From Octopus sinensis (lineage: Eukaryota), in the NCBI RefSeq assembly GCF_006345805.1, contig NW_021833026.1, positions 248,001-312,000 on the forward strand: 64,000 bases of DNA, given 5' to 3'. Under the pieces are notes generated by a model. It did not search any database. It saw only the letters and a list, made by a program, of their open reading frames with translations, and was not told the origin of the DNA. The stretch's first letter is position 1. Every line of letters starts with the position of its first letter. Positions 1,871 through 59,927 of this stretch are shown one piece after another. The translations under genes were made by a program, and so were the position numbers.

Positions 1871-4800
1871 AAACAAACAGAATAAGAAACGTTACAATGA
1901 GAAGCCAAAAAATCAAGAAGATCGTTATAAAGAATATCAAGAAATTATATCACGGAGGAATACGAAATTATATAATTCTAAATATTGGGAAATCTAGGAT
2001 TTAATTATAATGCAGTTAATGATTTTAAATATTTGGGGAATATCGGCACTATGTCCGATATATGTAAATTTTGTTCGGCCCTAAAATTTAAAGGGGAAAC
2101 AGCAGGCATGTGTTGCAATCTTGGTAAGGTAAATTTGCCTTCCTTATCGATTCCACCAAAACCACTATTGACGCTATTAAGAAATGAATCGCCGATCTCT
2201 AAGCATTTTCTTGAAAATATTCGAAAGTATAATAATTGTTTTCAGATGACATCGTTTGGAACAACAGGTAATTTTATTTATACGGGTTATATGCCCACAT
2301 ATAAGGTTCTTGGTCAAGTTTATCATAGGATGGGGTCACTACTCCCAAATGCAGGTGAGCAACATAGCTTTTTACAAATATATTTTTTGGAAAATTTTGA
2401 GGATCAGTCAACAAGAAGATTAGAAACAGAACCAAAATTACGTCAATCTATAATTAACATGTTACAAAACATGTTACAAGAACATAATTCATATATTTTA
2501 TCTTTTAGGACTGTTATGCGGACTACAAGAGAAAAGGACTATAAAGTAATTATTCATGCAGATAGGACACCTACGGGAGCACATGAAGGACGGTACAACA
2601 TACCAAGTTCTAATCAGGTTGGGGTTTTGATAGTAGGGCAACAATATGATAAACGAGATATTATCGTTAATCATAAAGACAGTGGACTACGAAGAATTTC
2701 AGAAACACATCGTTCATATGATGCTCTACAGTACCCTCTGATATTTTCAAGAGGGGCAGATGGATATAATTTTAAGGTTATGCAGCAAAATCCACTGACA
2801 GGACAAAATACAAATAAAAAAATTAGCTGTATGGCATTTTACTCCTATAGATTCATGCTAAGAAAAGAAGAATTTAATACTATTCATCGAACAGGACAAT
2901 TGTTTAATCAATATTTAGTTGACATGTATGCGAAGATTGAATCTGAGAGACTATTATACTTTCGTTTAAATCAACAAACAACGAAAACTTAGAGCAGAAG
3001 AATATATACATCTCAGAGATGCGATTATTAATGATGGTAATGTTTCTGATGTAGGTCAAATGATCATATTACCCTCATCATTTACAGGAGGACCAAGATA
3101 TATGCATGAACGAACACAAGATGCAATGACATACGTAAGAAATTACGGTACTCCAGATTTATTCATTACGATTACGTGTAATCCTAAATGGCCAGAAATT
3201 ATTGATAACTTATTCATAGGTCAAAAGTCCGAGAATAGACATGATATAATTGCAAGAGTTTTTAGACAGAAAATTATTAAACTGATGGACCTAATAACGA
3301 AGAGTCATATATATGGGAAGACACGATGCCATATATACAGTTGAATGGCAGAAAAGAGGACTTCCACATTCACACATTTTGATATGGTTAGTTAACAAAA
3401 TTAGGCCCACTGAAATAGACGACTGCATATCCGCTGAAATTCCAAATCCAGAAGAGGATCTGGAATTATATGAGACCATCAGGAAAAATATGATACATGG
3501 TCCATGTGGAATTCTTAATAGGTCTTCACCATGTATGAAGAACGGTAAGTGTAGTAAAGGGTATCCAAAAGAATTTCTTTTCAATACTCAAACAGGAGAA
3601 AATGGGTATCCTCTTTACCGTAGGAGAAGGCCAAATGATGGGGGACATACAGTGACTATCAACGAAGGCAAGGAAAATGAAATAACAGTGGATAACAGGT
3701 GGGTAGTGCCTTATAGTCCACTGTTATGTAAAATTTTTAATGCTCATATAAATGTAGAATTCTGCAACTCAATTAAATCAATTAAATATGTCTGCAAATA
3801 CATCAACAAGGGGTCAGATCAGGCAGTTTTTACTATTGAAGGACGGGATGAGGTGACTCAATACATGCATGGGAGATATTTGCAGCAGTGAGGCTGCGTG
3901 GAAAATATTTGGATTTCCCATACATGATAGATATCCTTTGGTAATGCATTTAGAGGTACATTTGGAAAATGGACAAAGAGTTTACTTCAATGAAGAAAAT
4001 GTACAAGACCAAATACAAAACCCAAGGAATTCTACACTAATGGCTTTTTTTGAACTTTGTACATTAGACACATTTGCAAAAACATTATTATATTGTGAAA
4101 TTCCAAGATACTACAGGTGGGAAACTACCGGTAAGAAATTCAAACGAAGGATAAGAGGAGAACCAGTGAATGGACATCCAGGAATTGTAAGTAGTGATGC
4201 ATTGGGCAGGGTGTACACAGTTCACCCTAATAATGCCGAATGTTATTGTGTTAGGTTACTTCTGCATAACATCCGAGGACCGACATTTTTTACCGATTTA
4301 AAGACAGTTGATGGAGTAATCTGCGCAACATTTAGAGAAGCCTGTTTTAAATTGGGACTTTTAGAGGATGATAAAAGCTGGGACGACGCATTGACCGAAG
4401 CTGGGATTTTCAATATGCCATCAAAGATTAGATATTTATTACATTGATGTTGGCATATTGTAATATATCAAATCCTCTACAACTGTGGGAGAAGCATAAA
4501 GAAATAATGTGTGAAGATATATTAAAGAGGGATGCAAAATCAGGTTTTGACGAGGACATTTTTAATGAAGGATTACTAATTATTAATAGATCACTCGAAT
4601 CAGTCATTGGGAAAAATATATGTGAGTACGGGTTTAGCGTTAACAGTCAAAATATTACAAATAATTTGGAATATGACAAATATAATTTAGAAGAACTACA
4701 AAAAATACTTAATGAAAGGGAACCGAATTTATTGGAAGGTCAATTAAGAATCTACAATGAAATAAACAGAAAGATTGAAGAAAATGATGGTAAAATATTC

Positions 4801-6086
4801 TTCATAGATGCACCGGGAGGTACAGGTAAAACATATCTATTAAATTTATTATTGGCAAAGGCGAGATGCAATAATAAAATAGCTATAGCAGTTGCTTCTA
4901 CAGGTATTGCGGCTACGCTTTTAGATGGTGGACGAACAGCACATTCAATGTTCAAACTACCATTAAATCTAGCAAAGGATATGGAGCCAGTTTGTAATAT
5001 TAAAGGAAATTCACTTATTGGGACTATTATACGTGATTGTAATCTAATAGTATGGGATGAGTGTACAATGGTAAGTAAAAGAGCATTTGAAGCAGTTGAC
5101 AGAACTTTTCGCGACATCAAACATTCAGATTCACCTTTTGGTGGATCGGTGTTAGTATTAGCAGGTGATTTTAGACAGACACTGCCTATTATTCAAAGAG
5201 GAACACCAGCAGATGAACTTAATGCATGTTTGAAATCATCGTATTTGTGGACCTTGGTAAAAAAAATAAGTCTAAATGTAAATATTCGTGCACAAAAGTC
5301 AGAAACAAATTCATTCGCTAAGGTACTTTTAAATGTAGGGAATGGAACACTCGAAACAAATTCAGAAGATTTTAAGGTATCACTACCTCCAGAGTTATGC
5401 ATAAATGTAAACAGACCAGAAGAATTATTAACCTCAGTTTATCCAAATCTAGAGGAAAATTACACATGCTTTGACTGGCTTAGGGAAAGAGCAATACTAG
5501 CACCACTAAATGACGAAGTACATAATATTAATTTAGATTTGCTCATTAAATTACCAGGAATGGAACGTATTTATAAATCTGTAGATGTAATTATGGATCA
5601 AGAAACAGCATGTGAATATCCTGTGGAATTTCTAAATTCTTTAGAACCGTCAGGGATGCCTCATCATACTTTAAAATTAAAGGTAGGAGCGCCAGTTGTT
5701 CTATTACGAAATCTAGAATCTCCAAGGTTATGTAATGGTACAAGATTAGTAATAACAAATTTAATGTCTAATATTATAGAAGCAACGATATTAACGGGGA
5801 AAAATAAAGGAGAAGATGTTTATATTCCAAAAATTCCAATAATTTCGGATGAATTACCATTTAGATTTAAGAGACTACAATTTCCATTGAAGTTGAGTTT
5901 CGCAATGACAATCAACAAATCACAGGGACAAACCCTTAAGTAGTAGGTTTATTTTTAGCAAGTGAATGTTTTTCACATGGACAATTGTATGTAGGTTGTT
6001 CTAGGGTAGGTGAACGAGAAAACCTATTCATATACACCAAAGATTGTCGTACAAGCAATATAGTGTATCAACAAGCATTACAATAA
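1612..6086 (+). CDS. Helitron Rep/PIF1-helicase, broken by about 5 small indels
   Basis: Rep motifs PDLFITITCNPKW, EWQKRGLPHSHILIW (HUH) and KYINKG; helicase [45 protein letters not shown]. Breaks near 2980, 3340, 3880, 4440 and 5940. Confidence 0.92.
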
Positions 6087-6490
6087 TAAGATCTATATAA
6101 TATTTGATAATTTTATACTATAACAATCAATTTTTATTATATAGACGAGTGCTTTTCACATGGCCAGCTGTATGTGGGATGCTCAAGGGTAGGTAGAAGA
6201 GAAAATTTATATTGCCAAGGATGGACGGACTGCAAACATCGTTTATCCACAGGCCTTAGAATAAGGTTATATCAAAGCAGGTCGCATTTATATATCTAAA
6301 TAAATTTATAGTTATTTAAGGAAACTGCGAGCGTAGCGAGCAGGGCCTCCGCAGGAGCTAGCTCGCAGTGAGCAAAGCGAACTGCTGAGCTAGTTTATAC
6401 ATAAATTTGTTTTAATTTCATTAGGTTCCAAAACAAATTTTATAGCTTTCCAAACGATAGCTAGAGTCTTATTAACATGGTCTCGTAGGG

Positions 6491-9300: not shown

Positions 9301-9932
9301 GTTCAATTAGACAATGAGTACTGAATATCTCACTGATTATAAACGTTATCCTTTTTACAAGCTTGGTCAGTGCGTATTTCAAAAAATCTGCAAATATTAT
9401 GTCGCGAGCGCAGCGAGCACGCGAGCGCGACGCGCACATTTATTATATTTAAAATGGACTTAGTTTTTTTCAAAAAGAAAAAAAGCCATCGAAGCGCTGA
9501 TTTTTACGGGCGCTGGAGTCCGAAAGATTTGGAAAGGTAACAAAATATTTATGTCACACTAAATATGTAAAAACTTGTTTTATAAAGTTTTCTTTAAATT
9601 TTATAAATTAAAAAAATACACTGCCAAATAAATTTAATGGAAATTCTGATAATTTGATAAATATTTTAAATGATAGAAATTCGGAAAATCGTTAAAATAG
9701 CTTGACATGTATGAGTATATGGCTGACGTCTTATAAATCCAATAGTTTATCTAATCACCGAATAGTTAGACAAAAAATAATTAGACATGTTTTTATTTTT
9801 TTAAATACAAAAAAAATTTTTAGCCAACAAAAAAATCATATAATCTTTTTAAGTCTTTTGAGTGTATCTTTTTATGCATTCCTTCCCTGGTGCATATCAT
9901 GACAAAATTATTAGATAACTTTTCAATTATTA

Positions 9933-10358
9933 GCCCGTTGGCTGAAGACTAAGCTATGATAATGGATTTGGACAGTCGTGAGTTCGATTCCGAAGGAGGA
10001 CAGTTTTCATCCTGGGGCTAATTCTCGTTATTGTTCCCCTGCCCGTGAGGCAACGAGTACTTCTGGCACGACACAGTTGGAAATGGGGATCTCTTACCTT
10101 TCGGGCTTAGCGTGGCGTTATGGGGTCCACCATGTCAGTTGGAGAATTTCACTCGGATATGGCAACGCTCAGGAGGCACTTAATGCCTACCGAAAAAGGA
10201 CCTTTAGCTCTCAGACCCTGGGACATCGTCGTCTCAGGCCGATCATGCGGGCAGGATCGAACCTTTCAGAAGGATCTCCCTCGTTTGGATCGGCGATCAC
10301 GGGAATAACTATAATTAACTGGCTTTGCCCGTGTTTGGTCTTAAAAAAAAAAAAAAAA
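9933..10358 (+). mobile_element. Possible tRNA-derived SINE or other retroposed RNA
   Basis: GC-richer island; A-box-like TGGCTGAAG (9939), B-box-like GTTCGATTCC (9982), 16-nt poly(A) at 10343-10358; no convincing TSD or cloverleaf. Confidence 0.4.
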
Positions 10359-10574
10359 TGATTTTTACAGGTGAAGAATATGGGCTCTCAAATTTTTCTA
10401 ATCTGAGAGATGGATTTGTCCCATAATCTTTTTGAATTCTTGCCTTTGAAATAACAAAAAATAACGTATACAGTATCTCCTGCTTTCAAATCGTACTTAG
10501 AACGATGAACACCCATTCTTTTGTTCATTCGTTTGAAATAACGCGAGTCCAAATTAACCGGAACAAAATTAAAA

Positions 10575-10960
10575 TCGAATGATTTTCTGGCTCTTCATTA
10601 GTAGTTACAACATCTAAAAATATTTTCTATCTTGAATCAAACTATCGTCTTCGTTGTCATCAACTTGAGCATCATGGACAACCGGATTAAAACCAAATAT
10701 TCCATGATATCGCACATCTATATTATAGTTTTTATTTATAGCACCTGTCGAAGATGCGTTTTAAAATCATTGTGCCGACTTCTGGCTCATCATTAGTAGT
10801 TATAAAATCTAAAAAAAATTTTTTTGAATTAAACTATCGTCTCTGTTGTCATCAACTTGTGCATCATAGACAATTGGATTAAACCAGGTATTCCACGATA
10901 TCGCATAAATGGTGTTTCATCTATATTATAGTTTTTATTTATAGCACCTGTCGAAGAATG
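10575..10960. repeat. About 200-bp tandem duplication at the integrase 3' end
   Basis: CTGGCTC..CATTAGTAGTT...GCACCTGTCGAAGA is present twice. Confidence 0.75.
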
Positions 10961-11362
10961 TTTTGTCAGATTATACACATAAACCGCTTTCCTGATATGC
11001 TTAATCCAAGTTTTGTTCTGGTCTTCAAACACATCATTTTTGACAAAGATCTCGAAATTGTCTGATTAAACCGTTCTAAAAATCTCGAAATCGTCTGACT
11101 AAACCTATAATCCCCTGACTTTTAGGGTGATTAGGTCGTCCATGGATTTGTTTAACGTTATATTCCGCAAAAAGATTCGAAATGTGGGAATTTTTAAATT
11201 CCTTTCCATTGTCGGACTGAAAAAAATTCACAAGGTCCGTAGTCCATAAAAATTTCTTCAAGATTTTTCGCTACTTCTACACCTGATTTGTTTTTTAAAT
11301 TGCGTGTAATAGCATATTTGCTATATACATCAATGACTGTTAATAGCCACGTATATGAGTCA
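10700..11362 (-). pseudogene. Ginger/KRBA2-type DDE integrase, C-terminal part, with 29- and 27-nt introns
   Basis: YTWLLTVIDVYSKY, QSDNGKEF, HGRPNHPKSQGII|ERFNQTI after splicing 11076-11104; HSST|DETPF after splicing 10921-10947. Confidence 0.85.
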
Positions 11363-13632
11363 CTAGCTCGGCAGCTCGCTTCGCTCACCGCGACCTAGCT
11401 CCTGCGGAGGGCCTGTTTCATCAAACAACTATAAGTTTATGTAGATGTATAAAACTACCTGGTTTAATGTAACCCTATTCTATCGCCTGTTGATAAACGA
11501 TGTTTGTCGTCCGTCCTTCCTTGGCATATATGAATAAATTTTCTCTTCTGCCTACCTCGAGCATCCCACATACAGCTGTCCATGTGAAAAGCACTCACTC
11601 TCTAAAAATAACCCAACTACCTTTAATGACTGTCCCTGGGCCTTGTTTATTGTCATTGCAAACTTTTTTTTTCATTTTTTGTGGTCTATTTTTTTTATAT
11701 TTAATTTTTTCATTTTCCTTTGTAATTTCCTTTTTTTTCTTTTTTTATTTTTTTGTTTTTTACTGGCGGGAATGGGGCAGGGGGAGATGCGGCAGGCAGA
11801 AAGCGACACACAAAAAAGATTTAATTAATTACCTTATTAAGCTGACCGTTTTTTCTTCAGCTTCGTTTTTCCTCCTTCGGTTATCTATTTAAAAAATTAT
11901 TTTTGAATAATAAAAAAGTTTAGGAAAAGAGGCATACCGAAAATAAATTCTATCTTTACGAAAAACTCAAGTAAATAGTTAATATTTTTACGCAAATTCT
12001 TCTGATTGCGCTGTCAATTGGTGGTAAATTGTGTTAATGGTTGTGCTAATGTGGTTTCAACTATCAAAGTGTTTTTCAAAATCTGTTAATTGCACACTCT
12101 ATCAAGGTCGTGCGTCAATTGGTGGTAAATTGTGTTAATGATTGTGCTAATGTGGTTTCAACTATCAAAGTGGTTTTTCAAAATCTGTTAATTGCACACT
12201 CTATTCAAAGTCGTGCAATCTGTGATTGCACATTTGTCAAAGTCAAATATGATAATAGCTTTAATTTGATTCATGGTCGATAATGATATATGCATTTAAT
12301 TTTAAAGAGAAAAACATAGGATGAATTGAATTTCTTTATTGCGAATAATTGGGAGTTCATCATTGTTAATATTCTCGCTGTCGTTTTCATCAAGGATATT
12401 CTTAATACGTGAGATTTTTGCCTTGAAGGTTTTAATGGACCTCATCATGAATGTCGAGGACATTCGCGTTGTTCATTTAACCAAAATGCAGAAAATTTTT
12501 TTTTAATTTTTTTGGGGGGAAGGTTTTAAGGACTTCATCATGTAAGTCGAGGACATTGTAGTTGTTCATTTTAACCAAAATGCAGAAAATTTTTTTTAAT
12601 TTTTTTTGGGGGGAAGGTTTTAAGGACTTCATCATGTAAGTCGAGGACATTGTAGTTGTTCATTTTAACCAAAATGAAGAAAATTTTTTTTTAATTTTTT
12701 TGGGGGGGAAGGTTTTAAGGACTTCATCATGTAAGTCGAGGACATTGTAGTTGTTCATTTTAAACCCAAAATGCAGAATTTTTTTTTTTTTTTTTTTGGG
12801 GAAGGTTTTAAGGACTTCATCATGTAAGTCGAGGACATTGTAGTTGTTCATTTTAACCAAAATGAAGAAAATTTTTTTTTAATTTTTTTGGGGGGGAGGT
12901 TTTAAGGACTTCATCATGTAAGTCGAGGACATTGTAGTTGTTCATTTTAACCAAAATGCAGAAAATTTTTTTTTAATTTTTTTTTGGGGGGGAAGGTTTT
13001 AAGGACTTCATCATGTAAGTCGAGGACATTGTAGTTGTTCATTTTAACCAAAATGCAGAAAATTTTTTTTTAATTTTTTTTGGGGAGGAAGGTTTTAAGG
13101 ACTTCATCATGTAAGTCGAGGACATTGTAGTTGTTCATTTTAACCAAAATGCAGAAAATTTTTTTTTAATTTTTTTTGGGGGGAAGGTTTTAAGGACTTC
13201 ATCATGTAAGTCGAGGACATTGTAGTTGTTCATTTTAACCAAAATGCAGAAAATTTTTTTTTAATTTTTTTGGGGGGGAAGGTTTTAAGGACTTCATCAT
13301 GTAAGTCGAGGACATTGTAGTTGTTCATTTTAACCAAAATGCAAAATGCAGAAAATTTTTTTTTAATTTTTTTTGGGGGGGAAGGTTTTAAGGACTTCAT
13401 CATGTAAGTCGAGGACATTGTAGTTGTTCATTTTAACCAAAATGCAGAAAATTTTTTTTTTATTTTTTTGGGGGGAAGGTTTTAAGGACCTCATCATGTA
13501 AGTCGAGGACATCGTATTGCCAATTTGAAGTTGGTGTGCACACACAGACAGACAGACAGACAGACACACAGACAGACACACAGACAGACAGACAGACAGA
13601 CAGACACACACCATACCATTTTATTATTAAGA
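11363..13632 (-). mobile_element. Non-autonomous Helitron, family A copy 1
   Basis: A|TCTTAATAATAAAATGG...CTAG|T; (TGTC)n microsatellite; 12 array cores; helicase C-terminal remnant; removing it rejoins the integrase in frame (KNNN|DSYTW). Confidence 0.92.
12425..13515 (-). repeat. About 95-bp tandem array (12 cores) inside Helitron
   Basis: GTCGAGGAC core at 12453 through 13502, spacing 93-103 bp; variation is mostly homopolymer length. Confidence 0.95.
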
Positions 13633-13960
13633 TTATTATTCTTAAATCTATTAAATAACTTCATTAAATGATGCCTTTTAAGATCTATTAAGTCCATTTG
13701 AAATCTTCTGTGGGGTCTGTCTGCAATAACATGAAATTCAGAATCCGATTGTTTAAGGGGTGTGGAAAAGCGGCAAACGTCACAGTTCGAAACAACTTCA
13801 CGAATGATATCTCTTTTGATTATGAAAAATCGTTCTTGCATAGGTTCTCCAATGCGTTATGCCCACAATGATTGATTTTATGTAACTGTTCGGCAAGCAT
13901 TCTCATTTGTTTAGTATCGTCCAACGAAATCACTAATTTGTTAATGTTTCCATGATTTGC
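13633..13960 (-). pseudogene. N-terminal part of the same integrase (HHCC, first catalytic D region)
   Basis: LHKINHCGH...CDVC...RPHRRFQMDLIDL; probable 27-nt GC-AG intron at 13648-13674. Confidence 0.8.
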
Positions 13961-14096
13961 TTACAAAATTCTGAAATCCTTCTCAGATATAGTCTGCTAA
14001 CTACGATCTTCTGATTTCTGATTGCCAGGCCTCCTCCAAACGAATGGGAGTCAACCAATAGTCTCTTCTGCGATTGCTTGCACAAAATATAATCAA

Positions 14097-16472
14097 CTAG
14101 CTCGGCAGCTCGCTTCGCTCACCGCGACCTAGCTCCTGCGGAGGGCCTGTTTCATCAAAACACTATAAGTTTATGTAGATGTATAAAACTACCTGGTTTA
14201 ATGTAACCCTATTCTATCGCCTGTTGATAAACGATGTTTGTCGTCCGTCCTTCCTTGGCATATATGAATAAATTTTCTCTTCTGCCTACCCTCGAGCATC
14301 CCACATACAGCTGTCCATGTGAAAAGCACTCACTCTCTAAAAATAACCCAACTACCTTTATGACTGTCCGGGCCTTGTTTATTGTCATTGCAAAACTCAT
14401 CCTCAAAGGAAATTGCAGCCTTTTAAATCTAAATGGTAATTCATCAGAAATTATCGGAATTCGTGGAATATAAACATCCTCACCTCAATACTTACCTGTT
14501 AATATCGTCGCCTCTATTACGTTAGCCATCTTTCTTCAGCTTCATTTTTCCTCCTTCGGTTATCTATTTAAAAAATTATTTTTGAATAATAAAAAATATT
14601 AGGAAAAAAGAGGCATACAGAAAATAAATTCTATCTTTACGAAAAACTTCTTTTCTTAAGGTCAATAAAAAAATTTAGGAAAAGAGGCATACCGAAAATA
14701 AATTCTATCTTCACGAAAAACTTAACTAAATAGCTAATATTTTTACGCAAATTCTTCTGATTGCGCTGTCAATTGGTAAGTTAAATGTGTTAATGATTGT
14801 GCTAATGTGGTTTCAACTATCAAAGTGTTTTTCAAAATCAGTTAATTGCACACTCTATTCAAGGTCGTGCGTCAATTGGTGGTGGTAATTGTGTTAATGA
14901 TTGTGCTAATCTGGTTTCAACTATCAAAGTGGGTTTTCAAAATCTGTTAATTGCACACTCTATTCAAAGTCGTGCAATCTGTGATTGCACATTCTGTCAA
15001 AGTCAAATATGATAATAGCTTTAATTTTGATTCATGGTCGATAATGATATATGCATTTAATTTAAAGAGAAAAACATAGGATGAATTGAATTTCTTTATC
15101 GCGAATAATTGGGAGTTCATCATTGTTAATATTCTCGCTGTCGTTTTCATCAAGGATATTCTTAATACGTGAGATTTTTGCCTTGCAGGTTTTAATGGAC
15201 CTCATCATGAATGTCGAGGACATTCGCGTTGTTCATTTTAATCAAAATGCAGAAAATAATTTTTGATTTTTTGGGGGGGAAGGTTTTAAGGACTTCATCA
15301 TGTAAGTCGAGGACATTGTAGTTGTTCATTTTAACCAAAATGCAGAAAATTTTTTTTTAATTTTTTTTGGGGGGAAGGTTTTAAGGACTTCATCATGTAA
15401 GTTGAGGACATTGTAGTTGTTCATTTTAACAAAATGCAAACAGAAAATTTTTTTTTAATTTTTTTGGGGGGGAAGGTTTTAAGGACTTCATCATGTAAGT
15501 CGAGGACATTGTAGTTGTTCATTTTAACCAAAATGCAGAAATTTTTTTTTAATTTTTTTGGGGGGGAAGGTTTTAAGGACTTCATCATGTAAGTCGAGGA
15601 CATTGTAGTTGTTCATTTTAACCAAAATGCAGAAATTTTTTTTTAATTTTTTTTGGGGGGGAAGGTTTTAAGGACTTCATCATGTAAGTCGAGGACATTG
15701 TAGTTGTTCATTTTAACCAAAATGCAGAAAATTTTTTTTTAATTTTTTTGGGGGGAAGGTTTTAAGGACCTCATCATGTAAGTCGAGGACATTGTAGTTG
15801 TTCATTTTAACCAAAATGCAGAAAATTTTTTTTAATTATTTTTGGGGGGAAGGTTTTAAGGACTTCATCATGTAAGTCGAGGACATTGTAGTTGTTCATT
15901 TTAACCCAAATGGCAGAAAATTTTTTTTAATTTTTTTGGGGGGGAAGGTTTTAAGGACTTCATCATGTAAGTCGAGGACATTGTAGTTGTTCATTTTAAC
16001 CAAATGCAGAGAAATTTTTTTGTAATTTTTTTGGGGGGGAAGGTTTTAAGGACTCATCATGTAAGTCGAGGACATTGTAGTTGTTCATTTTAACCAAAAT
16101 GCAGAAATTTTTTTTTAATTATTTTTGGGGGGAAGGTTTTAAGGACTTCATCATGTAAGTCGAGGACATTGTAGTTGTTCATTTTAACCAAAATGCAGAA
16201 ATTTTTTTTTAATTTTTTTGGGGGGGAAGGTTTTAAGGACTTCATCATGTAAGTCGAGGACATTGAGTTGTTGTCATTTTAACCAAAATGCCAGAAAATT
16301 TTTTTTAATTTTTTTGGGGGGGAAGGTTTTAAGGACCTCATCATGTAAGTCGAGGACATCGTATTGCCAATTTGAAGTTGGTGTGCACACACACAGACAG
16401 ACAGACAGACAGACAGACACACAGACAGACAGACACACAGACGACACACACCATACCATTTTATTATTAAGA
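14097..16472 (-). mobile_element. Non-autonomous Helitron, family A copy 2
   Basis: A|TC...CTAG|T; microsatellite 16383-16450; 13 array cores; longer helicase C-terminal remnant (to ~14530). Confidence 0.92.
15185..16360 (-). repeat. About 95-bp tandem array (13 cores)
   Basis: Same unit as 12425-13515; cores at 15213 through 16349. Confidence 0.95.
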
Positions 16473-16818: not shown

Positions 16819-18370
16819 CAGTACCGGTCATATGTTTTAGACATTCTGAAAAAATCCCAGTGTTTGATTTTTCTAAAGAAAATCTTATTAAAAAAATGCT
16901 TTTCATTAAGCATTATCCATTTTTTTTAGTTATTTATTTTTTCCCAATCTCATCGTCACTGTATTTCGACATCTTGATCTTTTTATAGATTTTGTCGAAA
17001 CTGGCCCAGTCATATGTTTTAGACATTTACGATGCACATCCATAATCTGGAATTTTTAAAAGTTAAAACGAGTTTTTATTAATTAAAACACAAGTTAGTA
17101 TTTAGTTACATCTCCTTTTTTCGATATTACATCATGTATTCTATTTGGGATCGACAAATACAAGTTTTGAATATAATCATCTCCCATCTTGTTCCATTCA
17201 TCTTTTGCCATCTCCCATAGTTGCTTAACGTTCTGAGGGTTTCTATTTCTGATTTTGCTCTTTAAATAATGCCAGCAATTTTCTATTATGTTAAGATCTG
17301 GCGATTGTGCAGGCCAATTGTTTAAAATATCACTCCTTTTTCAAGCAAATAATTTTTTGTAGACCGTGAAGTATGACATGATGCACCATCTTGTTGGAAA
17401 ATAAAGTTATCATCATATATCTCAGAAAGCCCTTGTTCCAAGATTCGTTGATATTCTACGGAATCTACATTTCCTTCGCACAATATCAAGGCACTTTTTC
17501 CATCGTGTCTGATACCGCCCCAAACCATGATTGAAGGTGCGAATTTCTGAGTTTTCGTTGTGTAGTTCGAATTGAATCTATTTCCAGGAGGTCTCCTTAC
17601 GAATTCTCGTGCTTTCGAAATTAATTCGATGCGGCACTCGTCAGTAAAATGACCTTATTCCAATCGAATGAAATGTTTCTAGTGCAGAATATTTTTCTCT
17701 TCTTGATATTATTAGTTGAAAGTCTAGGTTTTTTGGCTGCTATTCTTACGAAAAGTTCATTTTTGCGTAAGATTCTTCGTACAGTTTCGACACTGACGGT
17801 TTCCGTAATATTTAGGTCTTTTCTGATTTCATTCGCTGTTTTTTTGGGAAAACGTCGAGACTCACGTACAAGATTCCTTTGAGCACGTGCCGAAAGAATA
17901 CAATTTCTTCCAGATTTTGGTCTGTCGTAAAACCCATTTCCATCCAAATACCGTTGGTAAGTGTGATTTACGGCGCATCTGGATATTCCAAGTAAAATCG
18001 ATATTTCATGTACGGTATGACCATTTTCTCATCATAAAAACAATTCTATGACGCTGTTCAACAGAAAGTCGTGGCATACTGCTTTCAAATTAATTTAAAA
18101 CACGTTTCCGATACGAAAAATAGAAAAAAAGTATAAATTTTATTGAAATATAATGAATTTAAATAAATGTCTAAAACATATGACTGGGCCAATTTCGACA
18201 AAATCCTTAAACATATGAAGAAGTCGAAGATAAAGCGAAGATAAGATATGAAAATGATAAATATATAAATAATATAGATATACTTACTAAAAAACTTTTA
18301 TTTTATTGGTTTCTTTAGAAAAATAAAAACTGGGATTTTTTCAGAATGTCTAAAAATATGACCGGTACTG
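16819..18370 (-). mobile_element. Tc1-like DD34E transposon with IR-DR ends, frameshifted transposase
   Basis: TA TSDs; TIR CAGTACCGGTCATATGTTTTAGACATT; inner direct repeats near 17007 and 18165; motifs FTDE, MVWGGI, QQDGASCH, WPAQSPDLNIIE. Confidence 0.93.
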
Positions 18371-19127: not shown

Positions 19128-22100
19128 TCTTAATAATAAAATGGTATGGTGTGTGTCTGTCTGTCTGTCTGTGTGTCTGTCTGTCTGTTGTGACACCCAC
19201 ATTCAAATGTTACAAACCAGATCAAATTGTCAAAACCTTCCCTTTTGTAGTTATTCGATAATGAGGCACAATAAAAGGTTGATATCCTCTAAGAACCTTC
19301 CTGTCAAAAAATTTAATAAGAAAGAATATCCTCGATGATGAGGTCCCCAAAACCTTCAAGTCAATTTTCTGCGTTTTTGTTAAAATGAACAACAAGAAAG
19401 TCCTCGACTCACATGATGTGGTCCCCCAAAACCTCAAGCCAAAAAATTAAAAAAAATTATTTTCTGCGTTTTTGTTAAATGAACAACAAGAAAGTCCTCG
19501 ACTCACATGATGTGGTCCCCCAAAACCTTCAAGCCAAAAAATTAAAAAAAATTATTTTCTGCGTTTTTGTTAAAATGAACAACAAGAAAGTCCTCGACTC
19601 ACATGATGTGGTCCCTCAAAACCTTCAAGCCAAAAAATTAAAAAAATTATTTTCTGCGTTTTTGTTAAAATGAACAACAAGAAAGTCCTCGACTCACATG
19701 ATGTGGTCCCCCAAAACCTTCAAGCCAAAAAATTAAAAAAAATTATTTTCTGCGTTTTTGTTAAAATGAACAACAAGAAAGTCCTCGACTCACATGATGT
19801 GGTCCCCCAAAACCTTCAAGCCAAAAAATTAAAAAAAATTATTTTCTGCGTTTTTGTTAAAATGAACAACAAGAAAGTCCTCGACTCACATGATGTGGTC
19901 CCCCAAAACCTTCAAGCCAAAAAATTAAAAAAAATTATTTTCTGCGTTTTTGTAAAATGAACAACAAGAAAGTCCTCGACTCACATGATGTGGTCCCCAA
20001 AAAACCTTCAAGTGAACAACAAGAAAGTCCTCGACTCACATGATGTGGTCCCCCAAAACTTCAAGCCAAAAAAATTAAAAAAAATTATTTTCTGCGTTTT
20101 TGTTAAAATAAACAACAAGAAAGTCCTCGACTCACATGATGTGGTCCCCCAAAACCTTCAAGCCAAAAAATTAAAAAAAATTATTTTCTGCGTTTTTGTT
20201 AAAATGAACAACAAGAAAGTCCTCGACTCACATGATGTGGTCCCTCAAAACCTTCAAGCCAAAAAATTAAAAAAAATTATTTTCTGCGTTTTTGTTAAAA
20301 TGAACAACAAGAAAGTCCTCGACTCACATGATGTGGTCCCTCAAAACCTTCAAGCCCAAAAATTAAAAAAAATTATTTTCTGCGTTTTTGTTAAATGAAC
20401 AACAAGAAAGTCCTCGACTCACATGATGTGGTCCCCCAAAACCTTCAAGCCAAAAATTAAAAAAAAATATTTTCTGCGTTTTTGTTAAAATGAACGACAA
20501 GAAAGTCCTCGACTCACATGATGAGGTCCTCCACAACCTTCAAGCCTCGTGAGGCCATTAATTAGCTTAGCTATCTTTTTTCGATGACATAAATTCTTTT
20601 TTGTTAATTTTCGTTAAAAAAATAAAATAAAAGCTCTAATTGTTATCGACCATGAATAGACTGTGCAATTATCAGATTTTGAAAACCACTAAAAAGGAAA
20701 AAGCAAAAATTATTAGAGATTTACATAATTGATTCTTTTTAACTGCCGAAACTGACAAATTCGATTATGCTACTGTTTAGATTTCTTAAAAGATAGAGGC
20801 AAATAAAATTTAAATTAGTCATGTAAATTTCAATTTGCCTATATTTAAATCTCCTTGATTTAACAGGCTTTAATTTTTTTCCTTATAATACTACAAAGAT
20901 GAAGCTGATTATCATTTTCTTTACCGAAACAGACAAGTTCGATTATGCTAAAGTTTCAATTCCTTTAAACATAGAGGCAATTAGTATAATGGCTTTGATT
21001 GGATAATACACTTTACATAAATTTCACTAAATAAATTTACGTAGAAAATTTAATATAAATACTGATTCGCGTTTACAAAATCATAAGAATGTCCTATAAA
21101 GAGAGATCTGAGAATGTTAACAAACAAGAGAATATGAACCATATAACAAAAAAAGAGAAACGAGGGAAGATGTGCTTAAATGGTGAGGGAACTTAGACAA
21201 CAGCTGAACAAGGTCAGGACTGCTGTTAGACTCAACTAGGGTAATAGAATTATGCATTCTAGGTTAATGGTTTGGGATGAATGTACGATGGCTCATAAAG
21301 GCGCATTCAAGCAGTTGACCGAACATATAGAGATATCAAGAATTGTAGCGACCATTTGTTTGGGGGAGCATTAGTTGTATTGGCAGGTGATTTTAGACAG
21401 ACGCTGCCAATTATTCAAAGAGGACGCCTGCGGATGAATTGAATGCCTGCCTCAAATCGTCATATTTTGGACACACGTGAAAAAGGTAAGCTTAGATGTA
21501 AATGTACATGCACATTTACAAGGCGTTAATAGCATATTCCCACAAATCCTTCTAGATATTGGAAATGGGGCAATCACTTCAGAATGCACGACCAGAAAAT
21601 TAGGCTACCGGAAGAATTATGTATTTTCGTAGAAACAGCAGAAGAATTATTGAATGCCGTCTATTCCGAACTATCTGAACACTACGTGAATTTCGACTGG
21701 CTGCGTGAACGAGCTATATTAGCTCCACTTAATGATGAGGTACTTAATATAAATTTAGATTTATTAATGAAAATCCCTGGCAGAGAAAGAATATATAAAT
21801 CGGTCGACGTTATTATGGACCATGAAAGGGCCTGCGATAGATTTAAGAGACTACAATTTCCGCTGAAGATAAGTTTTGCTATGACAATAAACAAGGCCCA
21901 GGGACAGTCTTTAAAGGTAGTAGGCTTATTTTTAGAGAACGAGTGCTTTTCACATGGCCAGCTGTATGTGGGGTGCTCAAGGGTAGGTAGAAGAGAAATT
22001 TATTTATATTTGCCAAAGATGGACGGACTGCAAACATCGTTTATCCACAGGCCTTAGAATAAGGTTATATCAAAGCAGGTCGCAGTTATATATTACATAA

Positions 22101-22190
22101 ATTTATAGTTATTTAAGGAAACTGCGAGCGTTAGCGAGCAGGGCCTCCGCAGGAGCTAGCTCGCAGTGAGCGAAGCGAATGCTGAGCTAG
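19128..22190 (+). mobile_element. Non-autonomous Helitron, family B
   Basis: TCTTAATAATAAAATGGTATGG 5' end identical to family A; microsatellite; 96-bp array; helicase remnants 21260-22057; hairpin plus CTAG|T. Confidence 0.92.
19325..20545 (+). repeat. 96-bp tandem array (13 full cores plus 1 degenerate)
   Basis: GTCCTCGACTCACATGATGTGGTCC core; one unit shortened to 55 bp at 19972-20027. Confidence 0.95.
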
Positions 22191-24568: not shown

Positions 24569-24683
24569 TATCTACAAATTTTTAATTAAAACTAATTTTT
24601 TATAATGTTTAAATTTGGATTTTTTATATTAATGAATGACACTATTTGACTGTTAATCAATTTTGATTGTACAATATCGCACA

Positions 24684-25772
24684 TGGTGGTGTAGTGGTTG
24701 GTCTAATAAAATAGCAGAATATCCTCAAAATTGGAACTCATTCTGGCAAATTTCACTGTGATGATGTTTTGTCTTGTGTAATGCTTTTGAAACTAAAGAA
24801 ATTCGAAAATGCACAGATAATAAGGTTTCTCTCCTTAGTACATATATAGGTCACGTGACAATTCAGTACTACAAACATGTGATATTGTCTTGGACGTGGG
24901 TGGTGTGTTTGACCACAGTAAAAAGAAGTATGATCACCACCAAAGAACATTTTCTGAGACAATGAGGAGTATTTCTGGAGGGAAGTACAACTACGACGTC
25001 AAACTCTCCAGTTCTGGTCTCATCTACTTTTTCTACGGACATGAAATGATTCGAGGACATCTCCCGTCAGTATCCGACGACCAATTGGAGTTGATCTACC
25101 GTCTGTTTTACCGAGATTTTATAATGCCTGTGGACGGGATAGACAACGGGGTCCTCCCTTGTGATTGTGGGACTCAAAAGTACTCGATTCACACAGACCT
25201 GTCCTCACGGGTGGCTCACTGTAACAGTCCCTGGTATTTTCCAGCAAATGATGCACAACAAGTTATTCCTTGACTGATGTTGTCAGATGGACTTGTTTTT
25301 TAAGGCTATGGAGGTTGTTCGAGGGGACTTGGATTCGACACTCCAATACTACTCCGACAGCATTTTGCGGGAGTACGATATTGTTTCTGCTGCTTTTTGT
25401 GGCCGATATTCTGTGGATGAGAGTGGGAGACTGCTCTATATTGAGGAGGGTTGTCCATTTGAAAATGTGCTGTCCGAGGTGGATTTATTGAAGGAGATTG
25501 TATTTGTGTTATGTCGCAGTTCACATGACAATTCTTACAGAGCTCAGGCTGTTTCGGACGGGTCTCGTTTTAATTTGAGGTTTGGTTAGTTTTGGAATTT
25601 CAGGTGTCGGTTCATGTCTGAGTTGCGAGGATTAACGGATGAGGAATTGGTGGCTAAGAGTGGCATTGAAGGACTCCGTTTTGTGCATTCGTCGGGGTTT
25701 ATGGCATGTGGGAGTACATTCGATGCTGTGCTGCAACTAGCCAGGCTTACTCTTAAGACCTATAAGGCATAA
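24684..25772 (+). CDS. MYG1: MYG1 exonuclease
   Basis: IGTHSGKFHCDD, DIVLDVGGVFD...YDHHQ, KLSSSGLIY, VDGIDNG, FVHSSGF; micro-introns. Confidence 0.93.
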
Positions 25773-26122
25773 TTAAGCTGTCTCTTGATTTGTTGTCTGT
25801 TCAACCGATTTCAATGGGCTGATTTTTATTCTCGAGCTTGTTTTTCTTTTCGAACTTTTATTATTCTTATTGTAGAGAAAAAATTAAACATGAATTTATT
25901 AAATTAATTGGAAGATAACCTTAATAGTAATTCAGATTCTCTCACAATTGTGGGCGAGAATAAAAAACTTTGAAAAAAATCATTTTGTGAATTCTAAGCA
26001 AGCATAAAAGATGCTTAAAAATTAAAATCATTTTTTTATCAAAATAAAAATTTAGATATACATTCACGTCATAGGCCGTATTCCAGAATCAAAAAAATAA
26101 CCATTAATATTTTTTAGTTAAC

Positions 26123-26680
26123 ATGGTCTCCAAAGCTCTTGAGCTTCTCGTAAATATCAAATTCAAACCTTCAGACATGCGACGGGTTAATTTACCTATT
26201 CGTTACGGGGGCATCGGCATTCGTTCTTGTGTTGATTTATCCCTCCCATGTTACCTTTCCTCGTTGTCTGCCTCTGCTAGTTCCTTCAACTCTGTTCTCT
26301 TCCCCTCCCCTGAACAGCCCGAGTTGTTGGAATATACGGCGGGTGTCAACATGTGGATTTCTCGTGGGCTTAAAATCCCGGACGTCCCTTCAGTTCAAAA
26401 GAACTGGGATGATATACATTGTTCCCATGTACTCGAAGATATCCGCCTACGTGCTGACCAATTTCAGTTGGCAAGCATTAATTGTGCCTGTCAACCCCAC
26501 TCGGCCGATTGGCTTGACGCTTTGCCGATTTCCTCTGCTGGAATGTTCCTGGACGACGAAAACTGGAGATAGACTTAGCACCCTTCCGCTATAGGTTCGA
26601 GATCTTTTACAGATTTGTTGAGGCCAGATATGATCACCTGGCACCAGAAGCATAACCATTAGAGGACTCGACATATTATT
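26123..26680 (+). pseudogene. CRE-like non-LTR retrotransposon fragment
   Basis: LPIRYGGIGIRS...YLSS...QKNWD...ADWLDALP...LDD parallels the element at 54177-57010. Confidence 0.8.
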
Positions 26681-28032: not shown

Positions 28033-29362
28033 ATGGGGATAGCTGATAAAAAAGAGAATGTGGCGGACCTCTTTGACTATGAAGGGCGAATGATTGGCCG
28101 TGGGACTTACGGAAACGTCTATAAGGCCAGATGCAAGTACACAACCATTGACAACCCACAGAAAGACTAAAATCGACTATGCCCTCAAACAAATCGACGG
28201 GAATTGTCTGTCCATATCGGCCTGTAGAGAAATCTCTGTAAACTGTTGTGTCGATCCCCCAGTTGCTGAGAGAAATCGACCACAGAAACGTCGTCAAGTT
28301 GCGGAAAGTGTTTCTGTCGAATATGGACAGGAAAATATACCTCCTGATGGACTATTCTGAGTACGACCTCTGGGTTGTGTCCCCTCGTCCATTCTCAGCA
28401 CATCATCGGGTACCACCGCTCCAGGAAGGTCAACAAGAGAGCTCTCCCCCTTCATTTAACCATGCTCAAGTCCATGATGGCACAAATGTTGAAGGGAATC
28501 AAATATTTACACGAAAACTGGATAATGCACAGAGATTTAGTTGTATTTGCTTTGCATTTCAGAAACCTGCAAATATTTTGGTGATGGGGGAAGGACCTGA
28601 GAAGGGCACTGTCAAAATCGCTGACTTTGGTTTTGCCAGGCTCTTTGACTCTCCTATGAAGCCTTTGGCGGATGTGGACCCCGTGGTGGTGACCTATTGG
28701 TACCGAGCCCCCGAATTGTTGTTGGGAGCCCGACACTACACCAAGGCAATAGGTTGGTTGTCCTGTCCGATCAAGACATTTGGGCCATCGGCTGCATATT
28801 TGCTGAGTTGCTTACGTTTGATCCACTCTTCTTCTGCCAACAGGAGAATATCAAATCCAGCAATCCCTACCAGTTTGAACAGCTTAATAAAATATTTCTC
28901 TTGATGGGATATCCTGAGGGTATTCGGCAGTGGTCATTTTCAGAAAGAGACTGGCCTTTGGTTGTAAACATGCCTGAGTACCCCACTCTTCTCCGAGACT
29001 TCAAACGGTCTAGATTTGGGGGGTTTTCCCTTAATTCATATTTCAAGTCGTTTGAACATGTGTATTTAAGCAATCGGATGTTCAATTTGGTAGGAATGGA
29101 GTGAAGTATTAGATTGTGTCTATGCTCAAGATGGACCCCCTTCAGAGGGTGTCAGCTGAGGAGGCACTGACTGACCAGTGGTTTATGGAAGACCCTCGTC
29201 CGCTACAGAAGTATAGGGGTGTTATATTCCAGCATATTCGAGATGGTCGATGTGACATATCCAAAAAGAGACTATCTCGAAAGTGCTAGGAATACGGAGA
29301 AAGTGCAGGAAAGTGCTGCCAAGAGAGTGGCCAACCAGGTTGGACAGCTACGATATTTGTAG
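28033..29362 (+). CDS. CDK8: Cyclin-dependent kinase 8/19
   Basis: [73 protein letters not shown]; 23-25 nt introns. Confidence 0.95.
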
Positions 29363-29671
29363 ATACGAGCTAATCAATCTAGAAATTACTCTTTTAATAA
29401 AAAACTATGAATTTTTAATTACATTGTCAGTCAGTTATAGAGTGGCCAACCACTTTTAAGTTGGACAGCTACGATATCCCTGGTCAATAAAATGTCTTTT
29501 TGTCTCTTGCTTCTAATCGTTTGCCTAAACTGGGTTGTGCCTATTTTTTTAGGTCTCCAATGACCTTCCGGATTAGGTTTCAAATTCGTTAATAAGTTTA
29601 CTCGGTGATGTATGAAAAAAAGCCAGTTTGATGGATATAATCGGCATTTATTTAGAATATAACTAACGCAG

Positions 29672-30750
<1,079 letters not shown>

Positions 30751-31020
30751 CAGCTATAGACAGTCAGCCACCACCAGGACTAGTTTACTATTGCCAGTCA
30801 AACCTAGAATTTAATTTACTAAATATTTATCCCTAAAAAGTATAATTAATTCAACAATTTCTGATTACTACACAAACTGGAGACTTGCCTTCTTTTGAAT
30901 GTTTTGTGTCCTCTTTGTTATTTGAGTAATTTTTTCTATGCTAAGTGAAATTATAAATTGATTTTGAAAAGAGTAAGGATAATTAGTAAAATATGTTAAT
31001 GTAATTCAATATGAAATTCA

Positions 31021-36273: not shown

Positions 36274-37508
36274 TTATAAATTAATGACCGTTTTGAATCC
36301 TATTCCTGCAGACAAGTTATCAAATGCCTTTTGATATTGGTCGATGGAATATCGGTGGGTAATAAGAAACGAAACATCAATCTTTCCCGACTGAATAAGA
36401 TCTATAGCCTTGGGGTAACTGCAGAATAAGTCACAACTTGATACCAATTGTAAGTATTTATGAATCCCTTGACTTCCAAATACTTCCAGACAATGTTTGA
36501 GGTGGAGATGGAATCCCCCCGAGACGATAACCCAACCAAAGTTAGAACACCTCCAGGAATAGTGGCCTGAATTGAAAAATGTAAAGAATACATTGACGAG
36601 GGTTTCAATGCTCGAACTAATGCCACAACAGTCAATCGAGACGTCCGCCATTCCTCCCAACTCCTGGACAACACGGTCACTAATTTGTGTTGGTGATTCG
36701 CCTCGACGAACGACCACTCCACAATCTGCCCCGTGTTTTTTGGCAAACTCGACCTTATCTTCGACAACGTCTAAAGTATGACACATCTGAGGTCCCACCA
36801 GTCACACAAATCTTGGAGGCTCCACAGACTTTGGCCACCATCATAGTCAGTATTCCAACCACGCCTAAAATAAGTTAAGACTGCCACCAATTCCGCCTAT
36901 CAAAACTGTCTGGCCAATGGAAATTCCTGCACGTTTGCAGATCCCGACAGCGATCGAGAGAGGCTGGACAAGTGCCCCCTCTTCAAAGGTCATGGAGTCG
37001 GGGATTTTATAGCAGCACGACGCCTTTTGAATATGCAACTCCGTCAGTGCACCATCCTCGTTAGCGTCTCCCAAATAACTCATATTTTCGCAGATGTTTC
37101 CCCTGCCTTCTCTGCAGAATCGACACTCCTTGCACATCAGCAGTGGCTCGATTGCCACACGGTCTCCTGGTGTGTTGTGGGGATATGACACACCTGGTTT
37201 TACATTGGTGACCTTGGCTCCAACTTCTTGTACGACTCCAGCGGGCTCGTGGCCAAGTCGGAGTGGCCTATGATTGAGGCAATTGTTGAGGCCGCCGGAA
37301 TTAATGCTGACAATGTCGCTGCCACACAGCCCCACCGACCGGATTTGTATTTTGGCATCTTTGAATAAATGTTAGACATTACCGTATTCACCAATGCTGG
37401 GAACTTGTTGAAATTCCTACAATTAATGAGGAATGATATTTTTACCAGTCGTAGGTCGTTGGGTCCGTACAAGACGACACTTTTGGACATTTCGCCGATT
37501 ACGGCCAT
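36274..37508 (-). CDS. Zn-dependent polyol dehydrogenase, sorbitol dehydrogenase-like
   Basis: GLCGSD, GHEPAG, GDRVAIEP, C-x2-C-x2-C-x7-C, GGIGVVG, IDCCG, FLITHRY. Confidence 0.85.
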
Positions 37509-37711
37509 GTCGGCTTAAATACAAAACGTGTGATACCGGGAATGATAGAAAACGATAAGGGATTAATACTCCTAATGCTAATTTATCAAATCCGGATTTA
37601 GATATATCTGGGGAATTGGTATAAAACCACAGAGTAGATATAGATTTATTATTCCTCACGCAAATATTCTACTAATACTTAAAACGAATAATTCGCTAGT
37701 TATCAGTCGCA

Positions 37712-50040: not shown

Positions 50041-50065
50041 CATTTCATTATCAATTTATTATTCT

Positions 50066-52652: not shown

Positions 52653-53099
52653 TTTATTATAAAATTAAGTCAGTGGTCTAGGTAATTGAGAAAAAAGAAT
52701 AAAGCCACAGAATATATTCACAACTACGCAGTTATTAACACCGAAATAAAACCATTTTCTTATTTGGACTAGAATGTTGATCTCCTTTAAGGTTTTCCAA
52801 TAAAAAAACCTCAGCAGTCCTTCATGTCGTGTCATTTAAGACAGACATTGGAAATTCTTTTTGAGACACAAGTAAAAACAATTTATTTCGTTCCTCTTTT
52901 AATTAATCGTAGTGTTACTATGTCGCGACCCACGCTGGCGACCATCCCACGCTGGCGACCATCAGCTTGACAGGTTATGACCTTCAGTTTGACAGGTGAT
53001 TTAATTTAAATTTGATATTTATTTAAACCGGAAAAAATTCATTTTAAGAAATGGTTTAGCGTCATTTTAGAAAAAAATTATGGTTTCTCTCAAAAGATG

Positions 53100-53833
53100 T
53101 TAGCATGAAAAAAGCGACTCAATTTATCATTATTAATGATCTGTATATTTGCAACTCCTAACTCATAGTCTCTATCTAAAGGACGAGAATAACCAAAAAC
53201 ACAAATTGGTCATTTATCTGGACAATGAAATGGAGATGAGGACACTAGCATTCGCCATTCACCACCAAGAATCCCACTGGGGAATACGAAAGCTTCAGAA
53301 AAAGTGCAGTGAATTCTATTTCACTGTAAAACGTCAAATCATCGAACAAATTATAAAATACTGCGAAATTTGTAAATTTGCCCTACCATTGAAACTATTT
53401 AAAAAAAATATACCTAGGTGTCGGATTCTAATTACCATGTAACTGCAGGAAACCCAATGAAAGATTCCAGGCGGATATTATTGATGTTAGAAGATATAAG
53501 GAGTTTAACGATGGATGTAATTGGATACTGACAATTATTGACATCCACAGCAAATTTGTTGTCTGCAAATCTCTAAAAAATAAAACTGCTTCTGGTAAGA
53601 CTTAAAATTTAATTGAAGAAATGGTGAATAAATCCAAAAATTGTTTTATCAAAATTGGATATTGTCAGATCTTGCAAACGGACAACGGGTTGGAATTCAA
53701 AAAAACCAAAATACGTAAAAATTGGAAACAATTTTTAGACAAAGTAACTTTTTCCTATAATACGACACACCACTCGGCGATCAATGAGACCCCCTTCAAA
53801 AGTTTAAGGGTATTTCTGGAATTAACACTGTGA
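53100..53833 (+). pseudogene. KRBA2-type integrase with micro-introns; segment carrying the catalytic E deleted
   Basis: HHQESHWG...CEIC; ERFQADIID...WILTIIDIHSKF; QTDNGLEF; introns 53143-53168 and 53595-53618. Confidence 0.85.
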
Positions 53834-58620: not shown

Positions 58621-59927
58621 GAATTCAATTTCAATATATTTTATTTAATATTAATAATACAAATAATATTAATTTCAGACACGGATTTATGTGGGGATAT
58701 GATTTGTACAACATATAAATACAGTAAAGTTCTCAAATTGGCCTAAAATTGTTCTTGAACTATTTTTGACCAAAGTTATGTAAAAATAGTTATAGATCAG
58801 GTTGTTTGTCATTTATCATTGCTTCGTGTAATTTATGCATTCTAACTTGTTTTTGAATTTTCTAAAAAATCCTTTTGGATTTTTAAAATCGCTAATAGAT
58901 AACTTTTCTGCAATTTTTTTGCTTTATTTGATATCATTACATCATTTAAAATATCACTTGGCATAAACTAATTAAAATACCCTTTTATTTCATAAAATCT
59001 ATCCATTCTTCAAGCTTAGTATCAAGTTGATGAAATTTAAACGATTTGCATTTTATTGTTGAACGAATATAATTCTTGAATGTTTTTAATATGTCGCAGC
59101 TTTTATTAATGCCAATTCTTGTCAAAAATAAGATAATAAAATATTTTTTCAAAGAAAAGATTGACTAATTATTTTTAAGTATCTTTTTAAGGCGTTTAGA
59201 ACGCACATTTTTCACTATTCCTCACTATCTTTAACATTGACAAATTTGTTGTTCCTGGTGAATGCATATTTTGAATATACGTCTTCTACAGACATTAACC
59301 AAAAAATGATCATTTTGATTCTTAAATCTGCAGTAATAAACAATAAACTATAAATCTTTTAAGATCAATTAAATCCACTGGAAATCAGCGACAAGAATGA
59401 AGAATAAAATTTTCAGTTTTATTTTTTAGTCGAAATTTTGTAACTTTTGAAATATCCACGTTTTGACATTAAAAAACGGATTTCAGTAGACTGTACTCTG
59501 CATCATCTTTACCAGACAGTCTAATTTAATCCATAAAGCTAGCATAATTATTTTAACGTGGTTATTATTTTATAGCGAGCTGTCAGTGTTTTTAATATAA
59601 TATAAACTCTCGGCAGTTGTGAATTTTTTTTCAATTTTAAAATTAGCATTTGTCAAAATTAATGTGAATATTATTCATTTCTTTTCGTGAAATTCAAATA
59701 TTAAATAAATCACAAAATCTGTGAACGATTTAGCATTATTTTCATTTTTATATGTCAAAATTTCAAATTTTTGGAAACAATTAAGTCTTGTACTTACAAC
59801 AAGAACACGGGTAAAATTACATATTATAAAATAAATTTTGTGTTTTTAATAATGTTAGCCAAATTTGAGAAACTTTACTATACAGCTTTAGGATTAAATT
59901 TAATAAGTAAAATAAGTATTAATAAAA

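Follow-up and report, generated by a model that had tools for sequence, protein, structure and literature searches.

The 29-nt segment at positions 11076..11104 (minus strand) of the 64,000-nt stretch of DNA analysed here, hereafter the window, is near certainly a locally templated copy of the exon directly downstream of it. The segment starts with GT, ends with AG and interrupts the gene of a transposon integrase within the G|AA codon for the glutamate of the DDE triad. It is a candidate micro-intron in phase 1 (i2), recognised from the sequence and from spliced protein-to-DNA alignment, in which three of the four guide proteins read it as an intron. On balance it was probably born as an intron, through templated repair of a DNA break in a live ancestor of the present gene copy. 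The templated insertion as such is hardly in doubt; what is uncertain is that it ever functioned as an intron.

The gene that carries the insert, here copy 1, is a stand-alone rve/H2C2 integrase gene, now a pseudogene (9820..14096, minus strand), delimited by its Pfam rve match, by homologues and by guided gene structure. The rve match has an E-value of 3.8e-13, and the matches to zf-H2C2 and Integrase_H2C2 are weak. Alignment with homologues shows D72/D75, D142 and E178 to be invariant; all three DDE residues are present in copy 1 after in silico repair of its frame, and its C-terminal SH3-like region aligns to that of stand-alone homologues of 420-440 aa. With its rve and zf-H2C2 domains, DDE triad and SH3-like C-terminus, copy 1 resembles the rve integrases with an H2C2 zinc finger (Ty3/gypsy-like, Ginger or Maverick class), from which it differs in being broken by intron-sized inserts and in having closest relatives of 43-57% identity. 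The closest of these, L001, is found on contig Ga0262470_17644 of JGI metagenome 3300026616 and shares 54-57% of its amino acids; it has a GC content of 27%, shows two frameshifts in 1.1 kb and lacks micro-introns. The next relatives are proteins of 420-440 aa, including microsporidian records, at 43-47% identity, and the protein database gave no relative of copy 1 above 57%. The microsporidian annotations include Nosema granulosis and Enteropsectra breve. They hint at movement of the element family between parasites or their hosts.

Read on the minus strand, the insert is GTTTAGTCAGACGATTTCGAGATTTTTAG (11104-11076) and the exon stretch that it resembles is GTTTAATCAGACAATTTCGAGATCTTTGT (11071-11043). 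The two are identical at 24 of 29 positions, just as an earlier note on this DNA had counted. A 28-mer captures the match better: the copied stretch GGTTTAGTCAGACGATTTCGAGATTTTT (11078..11105, minus strand) and its template GGTTTAATCAGACAATTTCGAGATCTTT (11045..11072, minus strand), which was located by a search of the window and encodes (R)FNQTISRSL in the downstream exon, agree at 25 of 28 positions with an offset of 33 nt, and the three mismatches are all transitions. The copied stretch begins one base 5' of the first intron base and extends to base 27 of the 29. When the whole window was searched for the 28-mer with at most three mismatches, the insert and its template were the only two matches, while none is expected according to 100 shuffled controls; chance similarity was thereby ruled out, and the local templating proposed in the earlier note holds. 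Near-tandem short duplications of this kind number two in all 64 kb, versus none in five Markov shuffles.

The insert is bordered by a 3-nt direct repeat, TAG, identified by placement analysis. The upstream copy lies at 11105..11107 (minus strand) and the second copy, at 11076-11078, forms the final three bases of the insert. A flanking repeat of 3 nt has a chance of a few per cent. It allows four equivalent placements of the insert, of which just one has GT..AG ends, with the donor GT coming from the template and the acceptor AG from the duplicated TAG. The chance that one of four placements has such ends is about 1-2%, a figure to be read with the fact that the case was picked for that very property, out of an unknown number of windows.

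Removal of the insert gives AEYNVKQIHGRPNHPKSQGIIERFNQTISRSLS (...GRPNHPKSQGIIERFNQTISRSLS) and brings back the motif HPKSQGII-E-RFNQT. Exact excision yields HPKSQGIIERFNQT, which is uninterrupted in seven homologues as well as in the DNA of L001. The interrupted codon G|AA is that of E178, invariant in the eight aligned integrases. If the insert is kept, the translation reads ...SQGIIGLVRRFRDF* and the frame ends at the insert's own TAG after 13 codons. Alignment and translation hence agree with what the earlier note had stated about the split codon, the restored motif and the stop upon retention. That note had also pointed out that an unrelated intron at the same site in distant homologues would speak against its reading. 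All seven aligned homologues are continuous there, and no unrelated intron was found at the site among them. In the DNA of L001, this site and two further insert positions of copy 1 are all free of inserts. The insert is therefore absent from all homologues found, the closest of which is only 57% identical at the protein level. An exact-pattern scan of metagenome contigs, with 0-30 nt allowed between the flanks, identified no family copy, and within the window no other copy covers the site, since a second integrase copy lacks the region and a paralogous fragment stops short of it. Two of the differences between insert and template can be polarised, Asn to Ser and Ser to Phe; both lie on the insert copy and none on the exon. 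The mismatches could stem from a low-fidelity repair polymerase at the birth of the insert.

Copy 1 is, from its sequence, a long-dead transposon relic, a point that the earlier note had missed. Its decay was reconstructed by spliced alignment to four different guide proteins, which gave concordant results. A non-autonomous Helitron of 2,270 nt with a 94-bp satellite (Helitron A; 11363..13632, minus strand; 5' TC and 3' CTAG ends) lies within the integrase ORF, inserted at an A|T site. Its flanks join in frame as DLIDLK...RFKNNN|DSYTWLLTVID, and the element is absent from the paralogous fragment, fragment 3. Sequence comparison revealed a sister copy (Helitron B; 14097..16472, minus strand) that adjoins the 5' end of the integrase. 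A SINE-like retroposon with a tRNA-like head and an A16 tail (9930..10358, plus strand, the 5' boundary being approximate) interrupts the C-terminal region, beyond which the integrase alignment resumes. Close to its 5' end this element has a tRNA-like B-box, GAGTTCGATTCC; ARAGORN detected no tRNA in it, and the window contains no second copy. Neither Rfam nor tRNA scans matched anything in the window. Self-comparison identified a tandem duplication of about 195 nt (10585..10957, minus strand) with a 24-nt junction filler, which repeats another intron-sized insert, i3, together with the next exon in copies that are about 82% identical. Finally there are at least four 1-nt frameshifts, determined by guided alignment on the minus strand: one in the zinc-finger region (13830..13837), one in a T7 run directly before QSDNGKEF (11226..11232), one in an A5 run 8-15 nt past the 3' end of the template 28-mer (11030..11037), and further ones in the C-terminal part. 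The idea that these frameshifts represent more micro-introns was rejected: the GT..AG pairs found there are not of the right length class, and frameshifts are what the guided alignment favours. Since copy 1 is a pseudogene, nothing selects for its splicing now. The wording of the earlier note, that intron birth had been caught in the act, is too strong for a single case in a dead copy with a Helitron, a SINE-like insert, a duplication and frameshifts.

Helitrons A and B are 95-98% identical, have the same orientation, each contain an array of about 12 units of the 94-bp satellite and, at 464 nt from each other, bracket the N-terminal exon of the integrase. The same satellite forms a diverged array (77-80%) at 19363-20544 on the strand opposite to both Helitrons. 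Helitron termini, with 5' TC and 3' CTAG, were seen in four copies, and the empty site of Helitron A, between A and T with no target duplication, was confirmed by the in-frame join and by fragment 3; the fold of the 3' end gave no convincing hairpin (z = -1). A related, near full-length Helitron with Helitron_like_N and PIF1 helicase domains lies at 1982-6393 (plus strand), its ORFs broken by 1-nt frameshifts, and a 3' fragment belonging to its family at 21533-22190 (plus strand). In the long ORFs of these two no micro-introns were found, unlike in the integrases. The window further contains reverse-transcriptase ORFs (RVT_1) of non-LTR retrotransposons and related fragments (54169-56919, plus strand; 26108-26569; 49999-50493; 61660-62235), a Tc1/mariner-like transposase (17098-18100, minus strand) and, at 47036-48367 (minus strand), a gene that has a Spin-doc-type zinc finger and is similar to domesticated hAT transposases.

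The window has a GC content of 36.9% and is rich in mobile elements. Its host genes yielded 45 introns of 21-32 nt, most often 22-26 nt, of which 15 were placed with protein guides and 30 come from unverified ab initio models that were retained by eye as gene-like. Gene finding ab initio by means of the longest ORF through GT..AG jumps was itself discarded as too permissive, as it places models on both strands everywhere. The CDK8-like kinase gene (28033-29360, plus strand) reaches its full ORF of about 375 aa upon removal of eight GT..AG introns of 22-25 nt, seven of which were independently recovered by homology-guided spliced alignment; its best database matches have 58-60% identity and come from many phyla. 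Immediately downstream on the opposite strand lies a second CDK-like kinase gene (29434-30940, minus strand). Together with a MYG1-like gene (24650-25769, plus strand) and a sorbitol-dehydrogenase-like (SORD-like) gene (36280-37510, minus strand; seven introns of 23-29 nt), these genes have introns of 21-29 nt roughly every 150 nt. In another host gene (33171-33464, minus strand) a unit of 99 nt, composed of a 72-nt exon and a near-identical 27-nt intron (GTAAGTAAAYTAAC...TGTAG), is present three times, intron number having been multiplied there via internal duplication of exon plus intron.

Ultra-short spliceosomal introns of less than 30 nt, with signals reduced to GT(a)...AG, have been described in dicyemids (Dicyema japonicum) and myxobolid myxozoans (PMC13644364; PMC6736024), and the genome of D. 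japonicum has 36.7% GC and 49% repeats (PMC6736024). The host genes of the window are alike in their introns of the <30 nt type, in their reduced signals and in GC content (36.9% versus 36.7%), whereas those papers deal with conserved introns of host genes and report neither the birth of introns nor any within transposon genes. GC content and repeat load agree with D. japonicum, and together with intron size they suggest that the window derives from a dicyemid-like or myxobolid-like animal. According to the host-intron matrix, splice signals are minimal beyond GT(a) and (y)AG. The length of the insert falls inside the host range, in its upper tail: two host introns have 29 nt and four of the 45 have at least 29 nt. 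Its PWM score of 10.2, with a leave-one-out median of 8.1 for host introns and a background median of 6.2 under a matrix low in information, places it among the highest-scoring 4.4% of all GT..AG pairs in the size range of 21-32 nt. As for the supposition in the earlier note that almost any GT..AG segment of ~25 nt is spliceable here, a 29-nt segment does lie within the host range, but the AG was supplied by the duplicated TAG and not by length.

Likeness between introns and exons was determined for 52 introns, each compared with 100 nt of both flanks and with shuffled controls. The 29-nt insert is the sole intron of the 52 that resembles its flanking exon, with a score of 18 where shuffles reach at most 11; other strong scores between intron and flank derive from the 99-nt array of the host gene, and an insert of copy 1 described below, i4, is marginal. 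With one exon-like intron in 52, the flank comparison does not bear out as general the cheap route to intron gain that the earlier note had read into the case.

Compared with its homologues, copy 1 has four inserts of at least 20 nt, all intron-sized and with G(T/C)..AG ends, and excising each of them restores the spacing of the homologues. Besides the 29-nt insert these are i1 (13648..13674, minus strand; 27 nt, GC..AG), which alignment shows to be lacking from the homologues, i3 (10921..10947, minus strand; 27 nt, GT..AG), the excision of which leads to the spacing HSST-DE-TPF as in the homologues, also by alignment, and i4 (10444..10471, minus strand; GT..AG), which has 28 nt, or 22 nt when taken from 10465, and corrects the frame in the guided alignment. 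Inserts i1 and i3 are in frame and stop-free and could be coding insertions instead of introns. An 11-mer of i4, GTTATTTCAAA, recurs exactly in the exon 65 nt upstream (~10535, minus strand), a match reached by 1 of 300-500 shuffles; this could be another, fainter sign of intron sequence that stems from an exon, or a coincidence in view of the roughly 100 tests made.

Two further integrase sequences in the window bear on these inserts. Fragment 3 (59230..59385, minus strand), a paralogue of copy 1 with 78% nucleotide identity in the aligned exon, lacks Helitron A and stops before the site of the 29-nt insert. It has an insert of 28 nt exactly at the i1 site, diverged in sequence and starting with AT where i1 starts with GC. 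As the insert at this site is common to both, it is older than the split of the two family members. Copy 2 (53060..53830, plus strand), assigned by alignment to a different family, has a core deletion that takes out the region of the glutamate. It is open over about 200 aa, with zero frameshifts, only when three GT..AG segments on the plus strand are excised (53143-53168, 26 nt; 53418-53448, 31 nt; 53595-53618, 24 nt), two of which shift the frame while the third holds a stop. This clean reading implies that integrase genes here carry micro-introns, at roughly the density of host genes. The positions of the inserts are not common to both integrase families, nor to the outgroup DNA. The pattern suggests repeated, lineage-specific intron gains in integrase genes.

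The series of events that we favour would start with a staggered double-strand break in the integrase gene, the gap of which was patched by copying a nearby stretch, that is, by end joining with templated filler. The anatomy of the insert, with TAG, a 26-nt filler templated 4-5 nt downstream and again TAG, fits such repair. Since the filler opens with the GT of the template and the duplicated TAG provides the terminal AG, a 29-nt GT..AG unit would arise in one step. The spliceosome of this genome, which appears to excise introns of 21-32 nt that are nearly free of signals besides GT and AG, could then remove it. The insertion would have hit an ancestor that was still active, with the patch spliced as a phase-1 micro-intron and the Glu codon restored. 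The lineage would have retained the patch and the copy in the window would have died afterwards, by Helitrons, the SINE, the internal duplication and frameshifts. A polymerase-theta-like enzyme could have been the agent. Templated insertions of the polymerase-theta type are shorter than 30 nt, are copied from within tens of nucleotides, have microhomology at the joint and contain low-fidelity mismatches. The insert is similar to them in its length, the proximity of its template, its microhomology and its mismatches. Insertions of this type are as a rule plain indels; the one at hand coincides with splice-competent ends.

The main competing explanation holds that the insertion was a lesion of the dead copy that was never spliced, its GT..AG ends and intron-like length being coincidental. 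We judge this a serious possibility, if short of probable. Copy 1 is full of neutral damage, including, about 120 nt away, the duplication of about 195 nt with its own 24-nt filler, and the divergence within the pair of 28-mers (3/28) does not exceed that within the internal duplication (about 18%), which means that the comparison has no resolution for dating the insert against the decay and that the insertion need not predate it. GT..AG pairs at 21-32 nt from each other are frequent, with 4,295 in the window on both strands, or about one per 30 nt, and unguided chaining through such pairs mends almost any frame. One exon-like intron among 52 is, moreover, what would be expected of a mutation rather than of a class of introns. 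On the other hand, exact GT..AG borders are expected for only the said 1-2% of such insertions, and the two near-tandem duplications per 64 kb are in mostly neutral DNA and correspond to about 0.05 expected in the gene before GT..AG ends are even required. The other inserts of at least 20 nt in the gene are intron-sized with G(T/C)..AG ends too, and those substitutions that can be polarised are found in the insert copy instead of the exon.

Birth of the intron by break repair in a live gene corresponds to a model of intron gain that has been described, of which a short flanking repeat and an identifiable filler are the marks (PMC3443670, PMC3020277). The insert shares the repeat, TAG, and a filler of identifiable origin; the homologues found, the closest at 57% protein identity, are free of it. 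It differs in that the filler stems from an exon 4-5 nt away instead of foreign or mitochondrial DNA, and in its carrier, an integrase pseudogene of a transposon. The other model to be considered is gain by tandem genomic duplication (Rogers model; reviewed in PMC3443670), for which a potato RdRp gene has provided a case (PMC4974935). Here too the insert duplicates the adjacent exon (25/28) and its excision restores the coding sequence exactly. However, the copy does not abut its template, as the insert has 29 nt at an offset of 33 nt with GAAC in between, and the ancestral exon ATTATAGAACGGTTT contains no AGGT (the template has CGGT), the donor junction ATAG|GT having been made by the insertion. 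The classical tandem-duplication model therefore does not fit. The scale differs as well, at about 30 nt here versus hundreds.

A strict tandem duplication of 33 nt as a single event was rejected, as excising 33 nt cannot bring the motif back. A variant of it would combine an in-frame tandem duplication of 33 nt (GAAC, the 28-mer and G) with a later deletion of 4 nt at the start of the first copy. The offset of 33 nt, a multiple of three, and the fact that all four differences between the copies would be transitions are in agreement with it, but it takes two events with the deletion exactly at the duplication boundary where one templated insertion of 29 nt with TAG microhomology suffices, and we deem it very improbable. 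It is more far-fetched still that an older, ordinary intron at the site had its content overwritten by exon-templated repair, with no birth at all: the gene does have other micro-introns, but a whole intron would have to be replaced precisely, the copy spanning base -1 to 27 of 29, and the homologues, including the DNA of the closest, are continuous at the site.

The origin of new spliceosomal introns is an old open question and few births are well documented. If the 29-nt insert was never spliced, it is a mere neutral indel in a dead transposon. If real, its birth as an intron would be a small-scale variant of known models of intron gain and not a new kind of process. The mechanism put forward in the earlier note is plausible and is supported indirectly by the other introns of the integrases. 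A far-reaching possibility, which we regard as rather unlikely, is that repair patches of 20-30 nt with a GT start and an AG end are ready-made introns, so that in animals with introns of 21-32 nt break repair would yield new introns as a matter of routine. The two integrase families, with at least six unshared inserts, would then have arrived without introns and reached a density like that of host genes, the 29-nt insert being the youngest and the one still recognisable. If the insert was spliced, the birth took a single step: one repair event drew the donor from the template and the body from the exon, while the target-site repeat gave the acceptor. Its size would, moreover, be one at which mutations of this sort are common, and intron birth of this kind thereby becomes testable genome-wide in dicyemid or myxobolid assemblies with RNA-seq.
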